64,000 nucleotides of DNA, taken from the sequence record NC_048821.1; one strand, given 5' to 3'. The position numbers and the translations under genes were made by a program. Shown piece by piece: positions 23,607 to 38,324 of this stretch; within the stretch, counting starts at the first letter, position 1, and each line of letters opens with the position of its first letter. The notes beneath the pieces were generated by a model. That model saw nothing but the letters and a program-made list of their open reading frames with translations. It did no database searches and had not been told where the DNA came from.

Positions 23607-25139
23607 ATGCGCTCTACTGTGACAGTGTGGAAGGGCGGGACTTACCTAAGAATAACAGACTACAAAGCGCCGTTCGTGCAAGACGTCATCATGCCGTTTT
23701 GTCGTCGGCGTTTATATCGTTTAGGTCAAGTACCCATTCCGGGGACAAGACAAAAGCGAACTGTAGTTACTCATTCTTTTGCTCGTTTGAATAATGACCG
23801 TAGTGAGTTTCGTATCTCCGCGGGTTTGCTTGATGACTTCATCCAGTTTATGGAAGGGGTTGGATATAAGCAGTCTCGTGTTAAGATTAAAGACGAACCG
23901 GTCATAAAAGGAAAGGACGTTGGGTTTAAATGGAAAGAGGGATGGGGAGCTCCTAGAGCGCATCAGGAAGACTGGTGTGAGTATCAGCTAGCCGAAGGTC
24001 CAGTAAAGGTTAACAACGCCCAAACAGGTGATGGGAAAACGTTTATGGCGACCCACACCATGGTGAACACCGGTAAGCGGACACTCATTACGTGTCTGCC
24101 TCGCTACGTGTCCATTTGGTTTGAGTCGTTAGGTAACTCGGTGGAGTTGAACCCTGAGGATATCATGTTGGTGGGTAATGGTAAGATCGAAGAAGCTGCC
24201 GAGACTATTAAAGAAGGTCGAGCGGATCCAAAGATCGTTATTCTTCCACTAACCCGTTATGATACCTACCTCAAGCGTGAGCGTGAAGAAGATATCCCGT
24301 GTTTAGATGAAGTTTTCTCTGACATGGAGATTGGCCTTCGTATCATGGATGAAGCACACGAAGATATTTATCGTGTCTATATGTCCATGTTGTTCGGTAA
24401 CTTCGAGAAAACCATCGCGCTTTCTGCGACATTAAAGGCAGACGATCCATTCGTTAACGATATCTATCGTTACGTTTATCCGCCCGCTATGCGACTCAAA
24501 GAACCTGAGTACAAAAAGTTCATCGACGTAATTGCTTACCATCATTACATCGACATGCAGAAATACCGTATCAACACCAAAGGTTTTGGTGGGTACTCTC
24601 ATGTTAAGTATGAACAAGCCATACTCAAATCACCTAAGTTGTATTCCCAGTACTTAGACTTGTGTAAACAAGCCTTTGAAGAATTCTACGTGAATGATCA
24701 TAAAGAAGGTCAGAAGTGTTTGTGGTTCTTTAGTACTGTGGAAATGGCAACTCGGATGAAGGAAGACTTTGAGGAAGCGTACCCAGATATGGATATCTGG
24801 AAGTTCACTAACACGGAGTCTAAGAACAAAGAAACGGAAATGTCCTACATGGAACACCAAGTTGTCTTTACTACACCTCAGTCTTGTGGTACCGGTAAGG
24901 ATATACCAGACTTGGCAGTAGCGTTCAGTCCGTATGCTTGCTCGTCTAGACAACGTAATGACCAGATGTTAGGTCGTACACGTCCGTTGAAGAACTACCC
25001 GGGCGATAATCCTAAATTTGTGTACTTTGTGTGCAGCTCTATTCCTAAACAAAAAGAGTACCACCAAAAACGCAAACAGTTATTTGCTGTGAAATCCAAA
25101 TCTCACCGCAACATCAATTCCTTCCACCACATTACTTAG
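23607..25139 (+). CDS. SF2 DNA helicase (UvsW-like, phiKZ gp75-like)
   Basis: Walker A QTGDGKT, DEAH, LSAT, GTGKDIPDL, QMLGRTR; GGAGG RBS. Confidence 0.88.
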   Translation: MRSTVTVWKGGTYLRITDYKAPFVQDVIMPFCRRRLYRLGQVPIPGTRQKRTVVTHSFARLNNDRSEFRISAGLLDDFIQFMEGVGYKQSRVKIKDEPVIKGKDVGFKWKEGWGAPRAHQEDWCEYQLAEGPVKVNNAQTGDGKTFMATHTMVNTGKRTLITCLPRYVSIWFESLGNSVELNPEDIMLVGNGKIEEAAETIKEGRADPKIVILPLTRYDTYLKREREEDIPCLDEVFSDMEIGLRIMDEAHEDIYRVYMSMLFGNFEKTIALSATLKADDPFVNDIYRYVYPPAMRLKEPEYKKFIDVIAYHHYIDMQKYRINTKGFGGYSHVKYEQAILKSPKLYSQYLDLCKQAFEEFYVNDHKEGQKCLWFFSTVEMATRMKEDFEEAYPDMDIWKFTNTESKNKETEMSYMEHQVVFTTPQSCGTGKDIPDLAVAFSPYACSSRQRNDQMLGRTRPLKNYPGDNPKFVYFVCSSIPKQKEYHQKRKQLFAVKSKSHRNINSFHHIT

Positions 25140-29230: not shown

Positions 29231-29995
29231 ATGCCAAAAATTAGTAAGCATAAGCAGGCAAAACGTAAACAACGTCAACGTAATGTGCAGGCTTCTAAAT
29301 CTAAACAACGCTTACAAGAAGCAAGAGAAAAACGTCAGTCAAAGGACCGACAACTTCTACAACAGCTCAATGACACTCTTGGTGGCGAACACGCCATGAG
29401 TGATGAAATGAAGAAAGAAGCAAAAGAAAAATTCTGGAAAGTGTTCAGTACATTACCTCCTCAGTTACAAAAAGACGCTATGGAGTCTTTTGAAAAAGAA
29501 GGCGGTACAGTAACACCAATGGACTTGGATGGTATGACTAACCTGCTTTGTGAAGGTCTGAACCACTACATCCGTCCACACGCTCTCGTTGCGACCCTAC
29601 ACTCTTTGGTAGATCAAGAGAAACTTGTATTAACTGAAGAGCTTACTGCTAAGATGGATGCGCTAGACGCAGCCGTACTAAAATACATTGGTAACGCGAC
29701 GGCTATACTGGAAGCTTTCGATACCATCCGCGGGCTCGACGAAGAGTTACAACACCAAGCTATTCTGGATAACGAAGTCCTGGGCGAACTGTTAATCCCG
29801 ACTCTGTTAAGTTATCAAGAAGACAGCGAAGAGATCATCTCTCCGTTGATTGAGTTGTCAGAACCACACACAGAACTTATCAACGACGATATCAAGTTCG
29901 TCGGTGAAATCCTAGGTAAAACTAACCTCTATGAAGTTTCTCGTGAAATCCACTTGGAGCGTGTAGAAGAACTGGTGAAAGTAAAAGGTGAATAA
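29231..29995 (+). CDS. Hypothetical protein with a strongly basic N-terminal arm
   Basis: 254 aa; MPKISKHKQAKRKQRQR...; acidic remainder. Confidence 0.7.
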   Translation: MPKISKHKQAKRKQRQRNVQASKSKQRLQEAREKRQSKDRQLLQQLNDTLGGEHAMSDEMKKEAKEKFWKVFSTLPPQLQKDAMESFEKEGGTVTPMDLDGMTNLLCEGLNHYIRPHALVATLHSLVDQEKLVLTEELTAKMDALDAAVLKYIGNATAILEAFDTIRGLDEELQHQAILDNEVLGELLIPTLLSYQEDSEEIISPLIELSEPHTELINDDIKFVGEILGKTNLYEVSREIHLERVEELVKVKGE

Positions 29996-31613
29996 GATGA
30001 CTGAAGAGTCAAAAGAAATTAAACGCCCTTCTTTGCGTGAAAAGCATACAGCAGAGAACACCACTATGAAGGAGTCGGTAAATCCGGCTCTTCCAAAGAC
30101 CGTGGAATTAGAAGAAGGCGACGTTACTTTCAACATTTTGTTGGGTACGAGTAAAGCTAACTTCGAACCTACTATGCGTCTTGCATTATCTTGGGCGCGC
30201 TACCAGTCTGCGTTAACTGAAGGTAAAGCGACTAAAGCTGAAATCACTCGTTATAAGAATCAGTACGAGGAATTAGCCAAGGAACAACACCCTGGTAAAA
30301 CGGAAGAAGAATTAGAAGTGATGATGTCTAACTTCTTAAGTTTCCACCGTAACCTAGTGGAGCTACCTTACTTCCGAAACCCGATGTTGAAAGATCGTCC
30401 GTGGGAGAACCTTTCTATCTTTGCAGATGGTAAAGAGGAAGGTGACATTGTACCACGTTTCCCTGGGGCTAAAAACGAAGCCACAGCGCTAGCTGAACGC
30501 ATGCAACGCTCTTCACAACGCAAAAGTCGTACACCAAATGGTTATGACGTACTCATGCGTGATTCGTTTATCCAAATCCGTTTAGAACCTAGCTCCATTA
30601 TCGAACTAGGTCAGGTGATTGACAAAATCAACAAAGAAATCCACGGTTACGTTTCTAGCTTCAATGGTAACTCCATGACCTTGATTCGTGCTTCGATTTA
30701 TCGTGTGTTCTGGAATTACATCAGTGAGAAAATCACGAGTCATTCCGTGTCGGATGTCGACGACCCACGTGACTTGACCCGCTTAGTAAAACTATCTGAC
30801 ATTCGTTCGCTGTTTGTTGACATGATGGCGGAACTAGCAGAAGATGGTTTACCTATTCAACTCTACTGCAATCAAAATGGTTGTGACTGGGTTGATTACG
30901 TTAAAGCGGATCCTGTCACTATGCTTTGGCATGACAAAACGTTGCTCAGCGACGAGCAAGCCGCGGCACTAGGTAGTCTAAAGAACTTTGCTGTGAAACA
31001 CACTTTTGAAGAAGTGTTGGCTTTACAAGACCAGTCCAAGTTCGTCGAAAAAGATCACATTGATTTCTATGAAGACACACACCGCTTAGAATTCGCCCAG
31101 CCTTCACTGAGTGAGTATTTCTGTGCTTTTGACGTGTTCATGGATTACATCCAACCAACGCTTCGTGAGATCCGTACGGACACCATGAACGATCAAGAGT
31201 ACGAAAAGAAACTAACCGTACTGATTGATACGGTCCGTGGTCTGGAATACATGCACTGGGCTTCGAAACTCACTATCTTCCCTGAAGCAGGTTCAGATGA
31301 AGAACCTGAGGTCTTTACTCGACGTGAAGACCCGGTTGGATTCTTTAATGGGTTATTACCTATCATTGATGAGTCAGACGATGTAACTCGTAAGTTGATT
31401 CATTGGTGTGTAGAACATGGTCCAGAGATGAGTTCCACTGTAGTGGGTATGAGTAACTCTGTGTGTCCTAAGTGTGGTAAAGACACTCATGGTGGATTGA
31501 CGTCACATGGCATCACTCCTATTGACCCATTCATGAGTTTTTTCATCCTGACCCGCCAAACGATTTCCGACCGAGCGGTGAGCCGCGGGATAATCGCACC
31601 AGACACCCTTTAA
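29988..31613 (+). CDS. Putative tail/baseplate assembly chaperone, short (0-frame) product
   Basis: 541 aa (alternative ATG 29997); CNQNGC and CPKCG Cys pairs reminiscent of T4 gp26-type chaperones; slippery site near the 3-prime end. Confidence 0.55.
   Translation: MNKMTEESKEIKRPSLREKHTAENTTMKESVNPALPKTVELEEGDVTFNILLGTSKANFEPTMRLALSWARYQSALTEGKATKAEITRYKNQYEELAKEQHPGKTEEELEVMMSNFLSFHRNLVELPYFRNPMLKDRPWENLSIFADGKEEGDIVPRFPGAKNEATALAERMQRSSQRKSRTPNGYDVLMRDSFIQIRLEPSSIIELGQVIDKINKEIHGYVSSFNGNSMTLIRASIYRVFWNYISEKITSHSVSDVDDPRDLTRLVKLSDIRSLFVDMMAELAEDGLPIQLYCNQNGCDWVDYVKADPVTMLWHDKTLLSDEQAAALGSLKNFAVKHTFEEVLALQDQSKFVEKDHIDFYEDTHRLEFAQPSLSEYFCAFDVFMDYIQPTLREIRTDTMNDQEYEKKLTVLIDTVRGLEYMHWASKLTIFPEAGSDEEPEVFTRREDPVGFFNGLLPIIDESDDVTRKLIHWCVEHGPEMSSTVVGMSNSVCPKCGKDTHGGLTSHGITPIDPFMSFFILTRQTISDRAVSRGIIAPDTL
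31538..31596 (+). promoter_or_regulatory. Putative programmed -1 ribosomal frameshift signal (slippery heptamer plus pseudoknot)
   Basis: T TTT TTC at 31538-31544 in the X XXY YYZ register; CCCGC(31552-56)/GCGGG(31585-89) and CGATT(31561-65)/AATCG(31592-96) form crossing stems. Confidence 0.65.
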
Positions 31614-32062
31614 TACCAGGGGTCTTAACCGACAACTTATATCACCTATACCGTGAACGGATTTCTAACATTGATCCTGATGGCATAGGTGATGTGCAAC
31701 ATCAAACCATAGCACTGATGTTGTACCGTGCAGGCTACGGACAGTTGTCAAAAGTTCCAGAGCCAGGAGACGATATCAAGCTCTATGACGATAGTTATGA
31801 ATTTGAACATCCATGGTCAATTCAAGCTAGAGCGAGAACCTATGCGTTTTACGAGTTAAAGGAAATCTTTGGCGATCTTAATACGTATTTGAACATGTCC
31901 CCTAAAGTTGCTTCAGAGATTGTTAAGGGTATGAGAAAAGGCGCTGAGGAGTTAAACCAACTCAGACAGCGACAAGCCAAAGCTCAACCTAAGTCTGGAG
32001 AACAATACGATTTGGAACAACAATTAGCTGAACTCGGAAGAGTAGATCTATCCAGCGGGTAA
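31544..32062 (+). CDS. -1 frame extension of the 541-aa protein (gpGT-like); annotated alone as a 122-aa ORF from GTG 31694
   Basis: Frame is open from 31526 with no stop; GTG 31694 has no properly spaced RBS; fusion would be about 691 aa. Confidence 0.6.
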   Translation, partial: HPDPPNDFRPSGEPRDNRTRHPLIPGVLTDNLYHLYRERISNIDPDGIGDVQHQTIALMLYRAGYGQLSKVPEPGDDIKLYDDSYEFEHPWSIQARARTYAFYELKEIFGDLNTYLNMSPKVASEIVKGMRKGAEELNQLRQRQAKAQPKSGEQYDLEQQLAELGRVDLSSG

Positions 32063-32067
32063 TAAGA

Positions 32068-32100
32068 ATAACGTCTGTCCTACGGGGCAGGCGTTATTTC
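32068..32100 (+). terminator. Intrinsic terminator
   Basis: ATAACGTCTGTCC-TACG-GGGCAGGCGTTAT hairpin with G-U pairs. Confidence 0.65.
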
Positions 32101-32141: not shown

Positions 32142-32702
32142 ATGGGTAAGTACACACCCCCAGTAGAAGAACAGGTTTTCGAAGAAGTTGAAAAAGAAGA
32201 AGTTACTACTGTTGAAGAAGAGCTTCCTAAAGCAACGGAATCCGAGAAGTTTAAATCGGTTGAAGAACCAGGCACTAAAATCCTACTAGAGAAAGTAGAT
32301 AAGTTTATCACTTTACTAGCAGGTCGTCGTAACGTACCTTCTGAGAAGTACGGTGAAGAACAACTTAACTTCATGCAAGCCTTAGACGATACGTTAAAAG
32401 AAGACTATGGTGTCTTTACCGCGGTAATGGACTACATGGTTAACTCAGTTCGTCGTGAACCTAAAGCGTTTGCTATGGATCGTTTGTTTGTCCATACCCA
32501 ACACCCAGAAGTGAAACGTGCTAAGAAAGAACAATACCTTCAAAAACACATGGCCCTACTTTCTGCCATTGTTACATTAGGTCGTAACTTAAAAGATCGT
32601 CATCGTGTGGGGCGTCAAGTAGATATCGTCATGTTAACCAAGGGTTATCATCCTAAGGTTGCACAAAACCTACAAAACTACTTTACTCGCACGTACAGTT
32701 AA
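32142..32702 (+). CDS. Conserved hypothetical protein with E-rich N-terminus
   Basis: 186 aa; GAGG RBS; TATG late-type motif at 32109-32112. Confidence 0.7.
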   Translation: MGKYTPPVEEQVFEEVEKEEVTTVEEELPKATESEKFKSVEEPGTKILLEKVDKFITLLAGRRNVPSEKYGEEQLNFMQALDDTLKEDYGVFTAVMDYMVNSVRREPKAFAMDRLFVHTQHPEVKRAKKEQYLQKHMALLSAIVTLGRNLKDRHRVGRQVDIVMLTKGYHPKVAQNLQNYFTRTYS

Positions 32703-32864: not shown

Positions 32865-33212
32865 ATGGAAATTTCTAAAACTAACAAAGCACGTATCGCA
32901 TCTGGTCTAGCTACAGTAGCTAACACAGTTATCGCTGAGAAAGTATTTGACTCTCACGCTATTGCTGGTTACCACGCAGTAACAGGTGGTCTACATACTG
33001 CTACAGTACAAGTTGATGAAGAACAAGATTTCAGCACTACTGATGCTGTTATCTACGGTGCGGGAATGGTCGCAGGTGGTACAATCGCATCTGCTGTATT
33101 TAAAGGTATTGGCCGTTTGTTCTCAGGTGATTCAACAGAATCAGAAGAAGACACTGACGAGATCAACCAAGTGATCACTGAAGTAACTGGCCTACAAAAC
33201 CCAGACGCATAA
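32865..33212 (+). CDS. Small Gly/Ala-rich, possibly membrane-inserting early protein
   Basis: 115 aa; AAGGA RBS; hydrophobic segment VIYGAGMVAGGTIASAVFKGIGRLF; acidic tail; high-expression codons. Confidence 0.65.
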   Translation: MEISKTNKARIASGLATVANTVIAEKVFDSHAIAGYHAVTGGLHTATVQVDEEQDFSTTDAVIYGAGMVAGGTIASAVFKGIGRLFSGDSTESEEDTDEINQVITEVTGLQNPDA

Positions 33213-33216
33213 TAAT

Positions 33217-33250
33217 TAGTACCTACCTCCCACTTGGGAGGTAGGTACTA
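33217..33250. terminator. Bidirectional terminator
   Basis: TAGTACCTACCTCCCA-CT-TGGGAGGTAGGTACTA 16-bp inverted repeat between convergent genes. Confidence 0.8.
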
Positions 33251-33270
33251 AACTCTCTTTATTTTTTTGT

Positions 33271-35028
33271 TTAAGCAGCAAGTGGGAGTGGTTCACCATA
33301 CTCCGCTTCATATAGCTCAGGGAAGATCTCATCCATTTCCTCGTAACCAGGGAAACGATGTATAGTCGCACATAGAGACACAGCATTAGCTTTAGGAGAA
33401 GAAGCATAGTTAACGCCAACTTCACGGAATTGAATTGGATTCAATCCTTGTATCGCACAAGCTTCTATCTTAGTCGTCTTATTAGAGATGTTCAATGCTA
33501 CGGTCGCTGTCGGGTACGCCCCCTCCACGTCAATGTCATCCGTGAGACCACGACCTCGAGATCGTATCCCCGGCATCCCGATAAAGACTGCTTTACCATT
33601 GTCTGCGTTTTTCTCTGTTTCTAATAACGCAATCCAATCTCCTAAGGTCGGTTTGTGTTGGTCTAATTCATCTTTCTTACCACCACGTCCTTTGGTTCCC
33701 CAAATGTAACCATGTTCTTCCGCAATAAACGAAAGTTCATTAGAAATACATTTAGGTTGAGATGGGTAATCAAAGAACTCTGTTGACTTCAACAGCAAAG
33801 GTAGGTTCAGTGCGATGTCGTTAGTTTTCTCATCCATTTCCTCAATAACCAAGTTATCGGAAATGTTGTACATACAGTATTCGAACTTAGCGTAACGCTG
33901 CATCCATCGGTGCCACGCTCCCTTACCCTGTGTTAAGTGAGAACCTTTGTCTGTGTAGAGCTTACCCTCGATACCGTTGTCTTGTGCGGTGAACTCCAAT
34001 GAGTAAGATTCTTTCTTACCTTTAGGAGCGTTTTTAATTGCATAGAAACTCGCACCATCCAACCATTGCCATTTGGCCGCCGCACGAACCGTCGGATAAC
34101 GTTCTTGCCACTCAAGTGGTTGAGAGTCACCGTTTTCTTTACGTTTATGAGTACGCCCTTCGTGGTATTGGTAATAACGGAATTCACGAGGAATAGAAGG
34201 GTCGGTATAGACTTCTTCTAAATCACGTCCACCTACGTTAAGCGCGTGTTCGTTCCTAACCATATCGTAGGAGGCGTTCCAAGATGAAATGAAATCAGGT
34301 TCCCACATGTGCCAAACTTTAATGTTGTTTTCCACACACTGAGTTTGGTTATCCACTATTTCGTAAACAACTGTTGCGTTGCGTTTACGTAGGCGTTCAC
34401 CAATTAATTCTTCTTCTGCTTTCTTAAGTCCGTCCAGGATCTCTTCATCCGACATCCCTTCAAAGAAACTCCGAACGACTGCAAAGTAGATATTCTTTTT
34501 CATGGTAGTCGAAGCCATGATGACGTCTTCACCATCACCGTTAACCATATCAGTTTCAACGTCGTATGCTGCCAACGTAGCTGCTTCGGTTTCTTGGTGT
34601 TCAGGATAACGTTCAAAGTAACGACGCTTAATCAATACGGGAACTGAAGTCTCGCAACCGAAAACATACGGGTTTGCCTTTACAGCCATCAGGTCAGCAT
34701 TACGGTCATTGATTCCGTATAAGACTCGTTTAATGTTCATCGCTAATCTGGCTTGAGTAGACTTATATTGTTTGACCAGTCGCTTATCGATGTAATCTTT
34801 CTTTTGTTCAAATTTACGGTATTTTTCTTTAACGATGTAGAAAGGACGAACGTAGTCTGGGACTTTAAGAAATTGGTTAGTACGGTCACCATTTTCGTGT
34901 ATGGTAGTTTGTTTGATGAACGTCATGTCTTTAAGCTTATCCCGCTTAGACGGAACATACACAGCGTGTTTACACACTTTCCCTACAACTGGGGATTCGC
35001 TCGAAGGCGGCGTGTAACTATAATTCAT
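33271..35028 (-). CDS. Family B DNA polymerase N-terminal subunit: 3-prime-5-prime exonuclease plus motif A (phiKZ gp82-like)
   Basis: ExoI YDVETD, ExoII SWNASYD, ExoIII YNISD, motif A DIDVEGAYP; ATG 35028 with AGGAAGG RBS (585 aa). Confidence 0.85.
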   Translation of the reverse strand: MNYSYTPPSSESPVVGKVCKHAVYVPSKRDKLKDMTFIKQTTIHENGDRTNQFLKVPDYVRPFYIVKEKYRKFEQKKDYIDKRLVKQYKSTQARLAMNIKRVLYGINDRNADLMAVKANPYVFGCETSVPVLIKRRYFERYPEHQETEAATLAAYDVETDMVNGDGEDVIMASTTMKKNIYFAVVRSFFEGMSDEEILDGLKKAEEELIGERLRKRNATVVYEIVDNQTQCVENNIKVWHMWEPDFISSWNASYDMVRNEHALNVGGRDLEEVYTDPSIPREFRYYQYHEGRTHKRKENGDSQPLEWQERYPTVRAAAKWQWLDGASFYAIKNAPKGKKESYSLEFTAQDNGIEGKLYTDKGSHLTQGKGAWHRWMQRYAKFEYCMYNISDNLVIEEMDEKTNDIALNLPLLLKSTEFFDYPSQPKCISNELSFIAEEHGYIWGTKGRGGKKDELDQHKPTLGDWIALLETEKNADNGKAVFIGMPGIRSRGRGLTDDIDVEGAYPTATVALNISNKTTKIEACAIQGLNPIQFREVGVNYASSPKANAVSLCATIHRFPGYEEMDEIFPELYEAEYGEPLPLAA

Positions 35029-36860: not shown

Positions 36861-38324
36861 ATGAGTAAAACTCCTAACTTTGTTTCTATGGGGACAGCTT
36901 CGGGTTCTGGTGTTAAGCTAAGTGATGGTGAACAACTCATTGACTTAGACGAACACTACGACGACAAGACCAGTCATGAAGAAACAGAAGCAATTGCGGA
37001 ATACTTACGCAACGGTAAGTTAAGTAAACGTGCTTTGGAACAACAAAAAGTTTCTGGCACTGAGCGCTTTGAACCAGGTTGTACTGAACTTAATGGCATC
37101 TTGGGTGGTGAGTCTTTCCTAAACAGCATCAAAGAAGGCGCTAAGAAATTTGTAGCTTGGGCGATTAAAATGATTTCGGGAGCACTCAAATGGATTTTGG
37201 TTAAAGCTCGTGAGTTCACTAACTATTTCAGTGACAACCGTGAGATTCAAAAGTCCGAAGAGATGCTTCGTGACATCGAAGGTAAACTGATGGAGTTAGG
37301 TGGTCCATCCTTTAACGTCATTGACGTTAAAGAGTTAACCGAAAGTCACCGTCCAGTAGTACGTCGTCTAGAAATGGTACGATTGCTGAAGGCAAGAAAC
37401 GTTAAAGTTCTGGAAGCGGCTAAACGTCTCACAGAGAACTCTTTCCATATCAAGAAATTGATTTCTGAACTGTCGCGTCACAAAGCAAGCGTTAACAAAA
37501 CCAAAGACACTTTTGATAAGAGTGTTAAACACCTTCGTAAACGCGCTAATGAAAAGTCTTTGACTATGGAAGACTTAGGGCTTTGGGAAGCACAAATCAC
37601 GGACTTAGTTGCCCAGCACTTACAAACGCATACTTTGAAAGCAGCGTATGTTAAGTTGGCGGCGGCAACCACGGTCGATGAGAAAGATCAAAACATCATC
37701 GATGTGGACAAACAATTCCGTGAATTCTCCGATATGATGAAGCGTACCCAGGAAGCCACCAAAGATAATGTTTCGGTAGAAGAGTTCGCTCAATTGTCAG
37801 ACTTCGGTAATCTACTCCGTAAGCAGATCAGTGAGAACCCTGGAGAGTGGGATATCGAAGTTGATATGTCTGATCTTAAAGACTTCGATAAACTGGTATC
37901 TATGAGTGACTTGGAGTTCTTCGAAACACTTGCACAGGAAACTGGTAACCCTCGCCCGGTAGCTGTGTACCGAGAGTTTGTGGCTCGTTGTGCTAACTAC
38001 GCAACTACGTTACAGATGTGTATCGAAGCCTCTGTGCGCTACAGTAACGAAGCACGTTACTTGGCAGAGTGGTCTCAACGTTATGATACTATCTTAGGTA
38101 TCTACTCCTTAGAAACTGTCAAGCAACGTAAAGACGCCCGTCAAGCTCACTATGATGCAACTGGTGAACAAATCGACACGGCTAACTTAAGGGATGTTCC
38201 TGAACATGCTCTTGACCCTGCTGAACGTCAGTGGCGTGCATTGTACGACCGTCTGTTGCCTGGGATGAAGAAGACGATGAACACGTTGTCTCGTAAACTC
38301 AATGCAGGAGTGACCGTAAAATGA
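36861..38324 (+). CDS. Putative internal head protein with propeptide
   Basis: ATG 36861 with AAGGAG RBS (487 aa); SGTE and GGES/F protease-type sites followed by the paralog-family FLNSIKEG..K segment. Confidence 0.6.
   Translation: MSKTPNFVSMGTASGSGVKLSDGEQLIDLDEHYDDKTSHEETEAIAEYLRNGKLSKRALEQQKVSGTERFEPGCTELNGILGGESFLNSIKEGAKKFVAWAIKMISGALKWILVKAREFTNYFSDNREIQKSEEMLRDIEGKLMELGGPSFNVIDVKELTESHRPVVRRLEMVRLLKARNVKVLEAAKRLTENSFHIKKLISELSRHKASVNKTKDTFDKSVKHLRKRANEKSLTMEDLGLWEAQITDLVAQHLQTHTLKAAYVKLAAATTVDEKDQNIIDVDKQFREFSDMMKRTQEATKDNVSVEEFAQLSDFGNLLRKQISENPGEWDIEVDMSDLKDFDKLVSMSDLEFFETLAQETGNPRPVAVYREFVARCANYATTLQMCIEASVRYSNEARYLAEWSQRYDTILGIYSLETVKQRKDARQAHYDATGEQIDTANLRDVPEHALDPAERQWRALYDRLLPGMKKTMNTLSRKLNAGVTVK

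Follow-up and report, generated by a model that had tools for sequence, protein, structure and literature searches.

A candidate programmed −1 frameshift site in core gene cg18 of Photobacterium phage PDCC-1 and its relatives in Chimalliviridae

The window analysed in this study is a stretch of 64,000 nucleotides (nt) from sequence record NC_048821.1, the genome of Photobacterium phage PDCC-1 (the region of the locus is 100% identical to MN562221, with the same coordinates). PDCC-1 belongs to Aphroditevirus, subfamily Gorgonvirinae, of the Chimalliviridae, the nucleus-forming jumbo phages. Near the 3' end of one of its open reading frames (ORFs), 29997-31613, which by sequence comparison is the Chimalliviridae core gene cg18 of the phiKZ gp77 family, a T_TTT_TTC heptamer is followed by a long open −1 frame. 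It is very likely, judging from the comparison of relatives, that two isoforms of 538 and about 688 amino acids (aa) are made from this locus by −1 recoding. The reading preferred here, to which a probability of about 0.6 is given, is that ribosomes would shift by −1 on the slip site and that the two isoforms would be used as an assembly factor pair. The new element would be a programmed −1 recoding site in a family-wide gene; the kind of mechanism is already known.

The putative slip site and the reading frames in PDCC-1

The features on which the finding is based are the following.

29997-31613, + strand: 0-frame ORF, 538 aa (541 aa from GTG 29988); phrog_4585; core gene cg18
31538-31544, + strand: slip site T_TTT_TTC (T6 run) in the 0-frame register, on the conserved Phe515-Phe516
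31611-31613, + strand: 0-frame stop TAA, 22 codons past the second Phe codon, which would end the short isoform
31544-32062, + strand: −1 extension, 172 codons and a stop, which would be read only after a slip; GenBank has only 31718-32062 (114 aa, phrog_24181)
31545-31569, + strand: 25 nt directly after the heptamer, coding in both frames under the proposed shift, invariant in the six closest relatives
31694-31720, + strand: candidate small-ORF starts GTG 31694 and ATG 31718, not conserved, with no well-spaced Shine-Dalgarno motif and with conserved residues upstream of both

The two Phe codons occupy 31539-41 and 31542-44 and are in the same frame whether the ORF is read from 29997 or from 29988, which gives the X_XXY_YYZ register. 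The first-pass annotation of the window, made from its letters only, had pointed out the heptamer in this register and a −1 frame free of stops from 31526 to 32062; both were seen again, the preceding −1 stop being the TGA at 31523-25. Over the whole gene the six closest relatives have only 73-87% DNA identity, against the invariance of 31545-31569.

The 0-frame protein matched phrog_4585 in PHROGs with E = 5e-157. According to GenBank record notes, its homologs are phiKZ gp077, 201phi2-1 gp136, PhiPA3 gp074 and EL gp47, and in the supplementary Chimalliviridae core-genome table (PMC10299810) cg18 corresponds to Goslar gp081 and RAY gp267 and is labelled 'hypothetical protein'. In tblastn, the PDCC-1 query found the gene in 127 records and the PhiPA3 query in 211. 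For PDCC-1, GenBank holds two hypothetical proteins, 29997-31613 (538 aa) and 31718-32062 (114 aa). Every GenBank record inspected splits the locus into two genes in the same way, the downstream part being named 'hypothetical protein'.

The GenBank start of the large ORF, ATG 29997, is preceded by a well-spaced AAGGTGA at −12 to −6. The GTG at 29988, from which a 541-aa and an approximately 691-aa product had initially been predicted, falls inside the end of the upstream gene 29231-29995. The idea of two products of −1 recoding was supported across relatives, but the sizes were not retained: ATG 29997 is the likely true start, and from it the products would be 538 aa and about 688 aa. In the −1 frame of PDCC-1, the first ATG, GTG or TTG is GTG 31694. 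The sequence AGGTGAT abuts this start with zero spacing, in agreement with the earlier remark that the GTG lacks a properly spaced ribosome-binding site. No Shine-Dalgarno-like motif was found at the annotated start ATG 31718; the neighbouring genes have one at −11 to −13.

Heptamers of the X_XXY_YYZ type stand in register 58 times in the 46 ORFs of at least 150 aa in the window. Only the one at 31538 is then followed by at least 100 open −1 codons (172, compared with a median of 7). In the ORFs of the window, Phe-Phe is encoded by TTC TTT in 19 of 26 cases and by T_TTT_TTY in one. A chance origin of the site together with its open −1 frame can be excluded.

Conservation of the site and of the −1 peptide in Chimalliviridae

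The comparative set comprised 48 loci (17 clusters at 40% identity) from isolates, IMG/VR contigs and metagenomic/Logan contigs with distant representatives of the gene, including phiKZ, 201phi2-1, PhiPA3, EL, OBP, SPN3US, Goslar and PCH45. All 48 loci had exactly one run of five or more T within the final 220 nt of the large ORF. The run was T6 in 19 loci, two large clades among them, T7 in 23, T8 in five and T9 in one, and T_TTT_TTY stood in the 0-frame register in 46 of the 48. The codon before the first Phe ended in T in 47 loci, although it encoded nine different amino acids. The 0-frame stop was located 9-52 codons past the run. The −1 frame was open back to the T-run in every locus and stayed open for 143-206 codons past it in all 46 complete loci; the median open length of the +1 frame was 6 codons.

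The −1 peptide is conserved from the slip site onwards. When the −1 piece alone, beginning with the codon after the heptamer, was used in tblastn, the match in Miami-like phages began at residue 1 (31% identity) and that in RisingSun at residue 11; both lay in the −1 frame and overlapped the last part of the upstream ORF. An alignment of 32 −1 pieces gave the motif [YHR]-P-x-P … R-x-[SH]-[PF]-L, with Pro2 and Leu23 conserved in at least 90% of the sequences. The codon-position test was informative as a sliding version across the −1 piece in Aphroditevirus. In −1 codons 20-50, which lie past the 0-frame stop and before any shared start, the variation was mainly in the third position (0.54-0.65 vs 0.24-0.41), and codons 50-58 were 90% identical upstream of the sole semi-conserved ATG, which occurs in five of the seven members. 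In the overlap of the two frames all three codon positions were constrained, as dual coding predicts. By these measures of codon variation, the downstream −1 part is under purifying selection. The first-pass annotation had proposed beforehand to compare orthologs for a conserved heptamer, a −1 frame free of stops and protein conservation that begins 5' of the GTG, and all three were found across the Chimalliviridae relatives.

An exhaustive profile search of a collection of 15 billion proteins resulted in 318 cluster representatives. Among the 150 that were listed, no in-frame fusion was detected, and in all of them the protein ended at most about 45 residues from Phe-Phe. A word-indexed protein search, even with a diverse alignment, returned close relatives only. 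Since the site, its register, the open −1 frame and the −1 peptide are conserved, and neither a conserved start nor a fused homolog was found in these sets, the production of both isoforms by −1 recoding is considered very likely.

Proposed ribosomal shift and alternative explanations

According to the ribosomal mechanism, most ribosomes would read through Phe515-Phe516 and stop 22 codons further on, which would give the 538-aa protein with a C-terminal helix that includes the 0-frame tail. A fraction of ribosomes would slip one base back on U_UUU_UUC (31538-31544), with both Phe-tRNAs re-pairing, and would read 172 more codons in the −1 frame to 32062. The resulting isoform, about 688 aa long, would lose the final part of the last helix and carry in its place a proline-rich linker and some 125 aa of helical C-terminal domain. 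Both isoforms would be needed and would act as a non-virion assembly factor pair, the long form adding a binding domain by analogy with lambda gpGT and gpG.

Two features of a canonical −1 site, the in-register heptamer and an overlapping startless −1 ORF conserved as protein, were found at cg18. As the third, a stimulator, the first-pass annotation had proposed a pseudoknot.

31552-31596, + strand: proposed H-type pseudoknot with two stems of 5 base pairs (bp); the complementary pentamers exist, the structure is not supported

The coordinates of the complementary pentamers were correct, but the structure did not stand up to comparison. The fold downstream of the run in PDCC-1 was no better than that of shuffled sequences (z = −0.82), and the Aphroditevirus consensus fold reached −1.7 kcal/mol with no conserved structure. 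The proposed pairs had no compensatory changes and were broken in two to three of seven close relatives. For the 70 nt downstream of the run in 32 diverse sequences, the mean z was +0.25 and no value was below −2. Rfam gave no frameshift element at the site, and no Shine-Dalgarno-like motif was seen just upstream of the T-run by eye, no formal scan having been made. Thus neither a hairpin or pseudoknot 5-9 nt downstream nor an upstream Shine-Dalgarno element was found, the search for pseudoknots being confined to the proposed one. All these results weigh against a ribosomal shift. Frameshifting may owe its efficiency to the U-run itself or to a signal that has not been recognised.

The lack of the RNA structure that is usual for ribosomal −1 shifts is at the same time a point in favour of transcriptional slippage, the strongest of the alternatives. 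In this mechanism, the phage or host RNA polymerase would stutter on the T6-T9 run and add one U to some transcripts, from which the long isoform would be translated, while unedited transcripts would give the short one; the insertion of one base yields exactly the −1 frame. The feature common to all 48 loci is a run of at least six T and not the heptamer. PhiPA3 has GTG TTT TTT (L011 3542-3547) and the Logan contig SRR32496736_10961 has GTT TTT TCA (L055 2912-2917), and both retain six T in a row as well as the open −1 frame. The drift of the run from T6 to T9, the five T8 loci and the T9 locus having arisen by extension into the preceding codon, is together with these two exceptions the pattern that is expected from polymerase slippage, and it also speaks against the ribosome. 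However, only T6 was present in 19 loci and only T7 in 23. Efficient slippage in bacteria, as in Thermus dnaX and Shigella mxiE, uses runs of about 8-10, and slippage homopolymers usually have at least eight residues. The X_XXY_YYZ register in 46 loci is not needed by a polymerase, although the conserved Phe-Phe partly explains it. The lack of any in-frame extension among the 150 listed representatives is only a weak argument against slippage, as an assembly shows whichever sequence is in the majority. Through its register and its length of T6 or T7 in most loci, the run points to the ribosomal shift as the most likely mechanism, whereas the two loci that lack the canonical heptamer, the T8 and T9 runs and the missing RNA structure keep transcriptional slippage alive as a serious, if clearly less probable, possibility. 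Both mechanisms yield the same protein.

That the locus holds two separate genes is improbable. The small ORF would then start at GTG 31694, at ATG 31718 or at a non-canonical start, perhaps by re-initiation, and the T-run would merely encode Phe-Phe. Two genes are annotated in all GenBank records inspected, PHROGs keeps the small ORF in separate families, and AGGTGAT is found just 5' of GTG 31694. Nevertheless, the first possible start (ATG, GTG or TTG) varies among relatives from 12 to 66 codons past the slip, at non-homologous positions, and the annotated starts are scattered between 31 nt 5' and 236 nt 3' of the upstream stop. Neither of the starts in the window has a well-spaced ribosome-binding site. 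The explanation also does not account for a −1 frame which is open to the T-run in 48 of 48 loci and conserved as protein, with third-position variation upstream of any shared start, for the T that precedes the Phe codons in 47 loci regardless of the amino acid, or for the use of TTT TTY for Phe-Phe, which PDCC-1 otherwise avoids. A homopolymer sequencing or assembly error, the true gene being a single 688-aa ORF, or a decaying gene with a dead downstream remnant can practically be dismissed: indel errors are typical of homopolymers and the split falls exactly on one, but the identical split with the same frame relation recurs in isolates and metagenomes, at 48 loci that were sequenced independently, no fused version is found among the 150 listed representatives, and the downstream part is under purifying selection.

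Predicted protein, neighbourhood and comparison with known systems

The 538-aa form was modelled by AlphaFold from a 60-sequence alignment with a predicted local distance difference test (pLDDT) score of 90.7 and a predicted template modelling (pTM) score of 0.89. The last helix of the model (residues 511-537) contains Phe515-Phe516 and the entire 0-frame tail, so that the shift would replace the end of that helix. With its 0-frame tail in a helix that was modelled with confidence, the short form looks functional too. Cys291, Cys296 and Cys490 were invariant and Cys493 was at least 90% conserved in the 60-sequence alignment, and all four were invariant in a 9-sequence alignment. The conservation of these four residues suggests a zinc site. 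Across the family, no part of the protein is more conserved than the four Cys and the peptide before the slip (31499-31544, residues ~502-516), G-[IF]-T-P-[IV]-D-[PA]-[FL]-M-x-F-F.

A fold search of the PDB with the 538-aa model found no neighbour (best E = 0.95), and profile searches of PDB sequences gave nothing for either piece; neither piece is therefore part of any deposited virion structure. The 0-frame protein is, as modelled, a new fold with a four-Cys site. Searches with both pieces and their neighbours gave nothing above noise in Pfam and unnamed families only in PHROGs. The −1 domain was modelled poorly from a shallow alignment (pLDDT 52), the first ~27 residues being unstructured and Pro-rich and followed by helices, which counts against the functional part of the proposal.

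When the 538-aa model was compared with predicted viral structures (BFVD) by Foldseek, members of the family were found, including a 687-aa virome protein automatically named 'Baseplate protein' (E = 8e-18). A weak match was obtained to proteins of 284-285 aa, one of which is named 'Baseplate hub assembly protein, bacteriophage T4-like' (E = 0.0026-0.01, probability 0.99-1.0), with template modelling (TM) scores of 0.26-0.27 on the query and 0.42 on the target. One GenBank homolog carries the name 'putative baseplate protein'. The baseplate names stem from automatic pipelines, and no Pfam or PHROG match to the T4 gp26-type family was detected in 60 members.

Goslar gp81 is not named in the main text of the virion study of that phage, where a composite model with 28 different proteins is described. 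The 201phi2-1 record marks gp138 and gp139 as 'identified using mass spectrometry', but not gp135-137. Absence from the solved virion structures would fit an assembly factor, and it is reasonable to guess that the protein is a non-virion assembly factor, perhaps a relative of T4-type hub assembly proteins. A bolder version is speculative and rather doubtful. In it, the site would be an ancient, family-wide switch that works with no stimulator and is driven by the nascent peptide …T-P-I-D-P-F-M-x-F-F or by the unusual RNA polymerase of the phage slipping on only six U's, and the isoforms would be a new, large, zinc-binding virion assembly-chaperone pair, perhaps of the baseplate hub, and an independent functional analogue of gpG/gpGT.

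The flanks of the pair contain two further features.

29231-29995, + strand: upstream gene, 254 aa, phiKZ gp78 homolog according to the record note; phrog_26494, with no assigned function; always precedes cg18 in relatives
32068-32100, + strand: GC-rich hairpin just 3' of the −1 ORF stop, with two G-U pairs and a weak T tail

The neighbourhood gp80, gp79 / gp78, gp77 is conserved in relatives, where virion RNA polymerase and helicase genes are also neighbours. In PDCC-1, the genes around cg18 are the gp78 homolog, the DNA polymerase gene and two small genes with no assigned function. The gene annotated as tape measure begins at 36861, 4.8 kilobases away and beyond the DNA polymerase gene, which agrees with the initial remark that the pair is not next to a tail tube or tape-measure gene. 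The pair is followed by a 186-aa gene at 32142-32702 (phrog_14374, unnamed). The same gene follows it in Miami, EL, RisingSun, OBP, N1M2, pEt-SU and others, though it is not found 3' of the pair in the phiKZ/PhiPA3/201phi2-1 group. Its position in many relatives suggests a conserved four-gene module around cg18. In a distant relative (L056 3263-4062; GCA_043956595.1, contig JBINOD010002905.1), a Cpn60/GroEL-type chaperonin gene (PF00118) lies directly after the small −1 ORF.

The hairpin at 32068-32100 may mark the end of the transcription unit. It was not listed by the terminator scan, and it had a weak Rfam match, on the minus strand, to the terminal hairpin of a small RNA. A perfect 16-bp palindromic hairpin at 33216-33251, between the convergent genes 32865-33212 (+) and DNA polymerase 33271-35028 (−), is probably a bidirectional terminator because the terminator scan lists it on both strands. 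Elsewhere in the window, the terminase large subunit (23607-25139) is annotated in GenBank as intein-containing.

Conserved phage frameshifts are textbook knowledge for tail assembly chaperones, and the first-pass annotation had described the locus as a pair of the gpG/gpGT style. The layout justifies the comparison. As in lambda gpG/gpGT and P2 gpE/gpE+E', the −1 shift would occur on a heptamer near the 3' end of the upstream ORF and the 0-frame stops soon after; the shifted product would consist of the whole N-terminal body and an extra C-terminal domain; and the arrangement is far more widely conserved than the sequences. As with lambda, neither product was found in the virion, as far as the main text of the Goslar virion study and the record notes of 201phi2-1 go. 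The cg18 body, however, is 516-538 aa, compared with about 100-150 aa for the chaperones, the gene is not located between tail tube and tape-measure genes, and there was no Pfam, PHROG or fold match to a tail assembly chaperone, the sole chaperone in the Foldseek list having E = 1.9. Membership of cg18 in the tail-assembly-chaperone family, as opposed to the likeness in layout, was rejected, as size, position, sequence and fold all fail.

Other recoded genes resemble the locus in part. E. coli dnaX also gives two isoforms (tau and gamma) by a −1 shift on a homopolymeric heptamer in a conserved gene, and Thermus dnaX arrives at the same two isoforms through transcriptional slippage; the same two mechanisms come into question for cg18. 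In E. coli dnaX, however, the shift yields the shorter isoform, and a Shine-Dalgarno-like element lies upstream of the site and a strong hairpin downstream, whereas the shifted cg18 product would be the longer one and neither stimulator was found. In IS3-family OrfA/OrfAB, a −1 shift on a homopolymeric heptamer likewise fuses a startless downstream ORF; these heptamers are of the A_AAA_AAG type with a pseudoknot or hairpin, and the proteins are unrelated to cg18. The likeness to the T4 gp26-type 'baseplate hub assembly protein' (InterPro/Pfam T4_baseplate) consists of the weak Foldseek match of the cg18 model, in contrast to the lack of a Pfam or PHROG match in the 60 members. The first-pass annotation had likened the Cys pairs and the short C-terminal domain to T4 gp26/gp51, a likeness that is a lead at most. 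To our knowledge, no frameshift is known in T4 gene 26.

In the literature searched, which included the core-genome paper, a 2025 review, the Goslar structure and a transposon sequencing (Tn-seq) study, no frameshift, slippery site or function was described for phiKZ gp77, cg18 or Goslar gp81, in line with the earlier statement that such a pair had not been described in Chimalliviridae. Several matches to 'gp77' or 'gp136' concerned same-numbered genes of other phages and were discarded.

More than 200 deposited jumbo-phage genomes contain cg18 homologs, and in the inspected records the start given to the downstream part is arbitrary. The actual gene product, probably of about 690 aa, is in no database. 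PhiPA3 and the contig SRR32496736_10961 are natural cases for distinguishing ribosomal from transcriptional slippage, and a site with no detectable stimulator is a natural case for studying what makes a bare U-run shift. As cg18 is a core gene without an assigned function, the two predicted isoforms, the confidently modelled new fold, the four-Cys site and the absence from solved virions provide a handle for proteomics and structural work. If the proposal is true, cg18 would be a second, unrelated phage gene family in which a frameshift split is kept across a whole virus family, which would imply that the ratio of the isoforms matters for an essential step.

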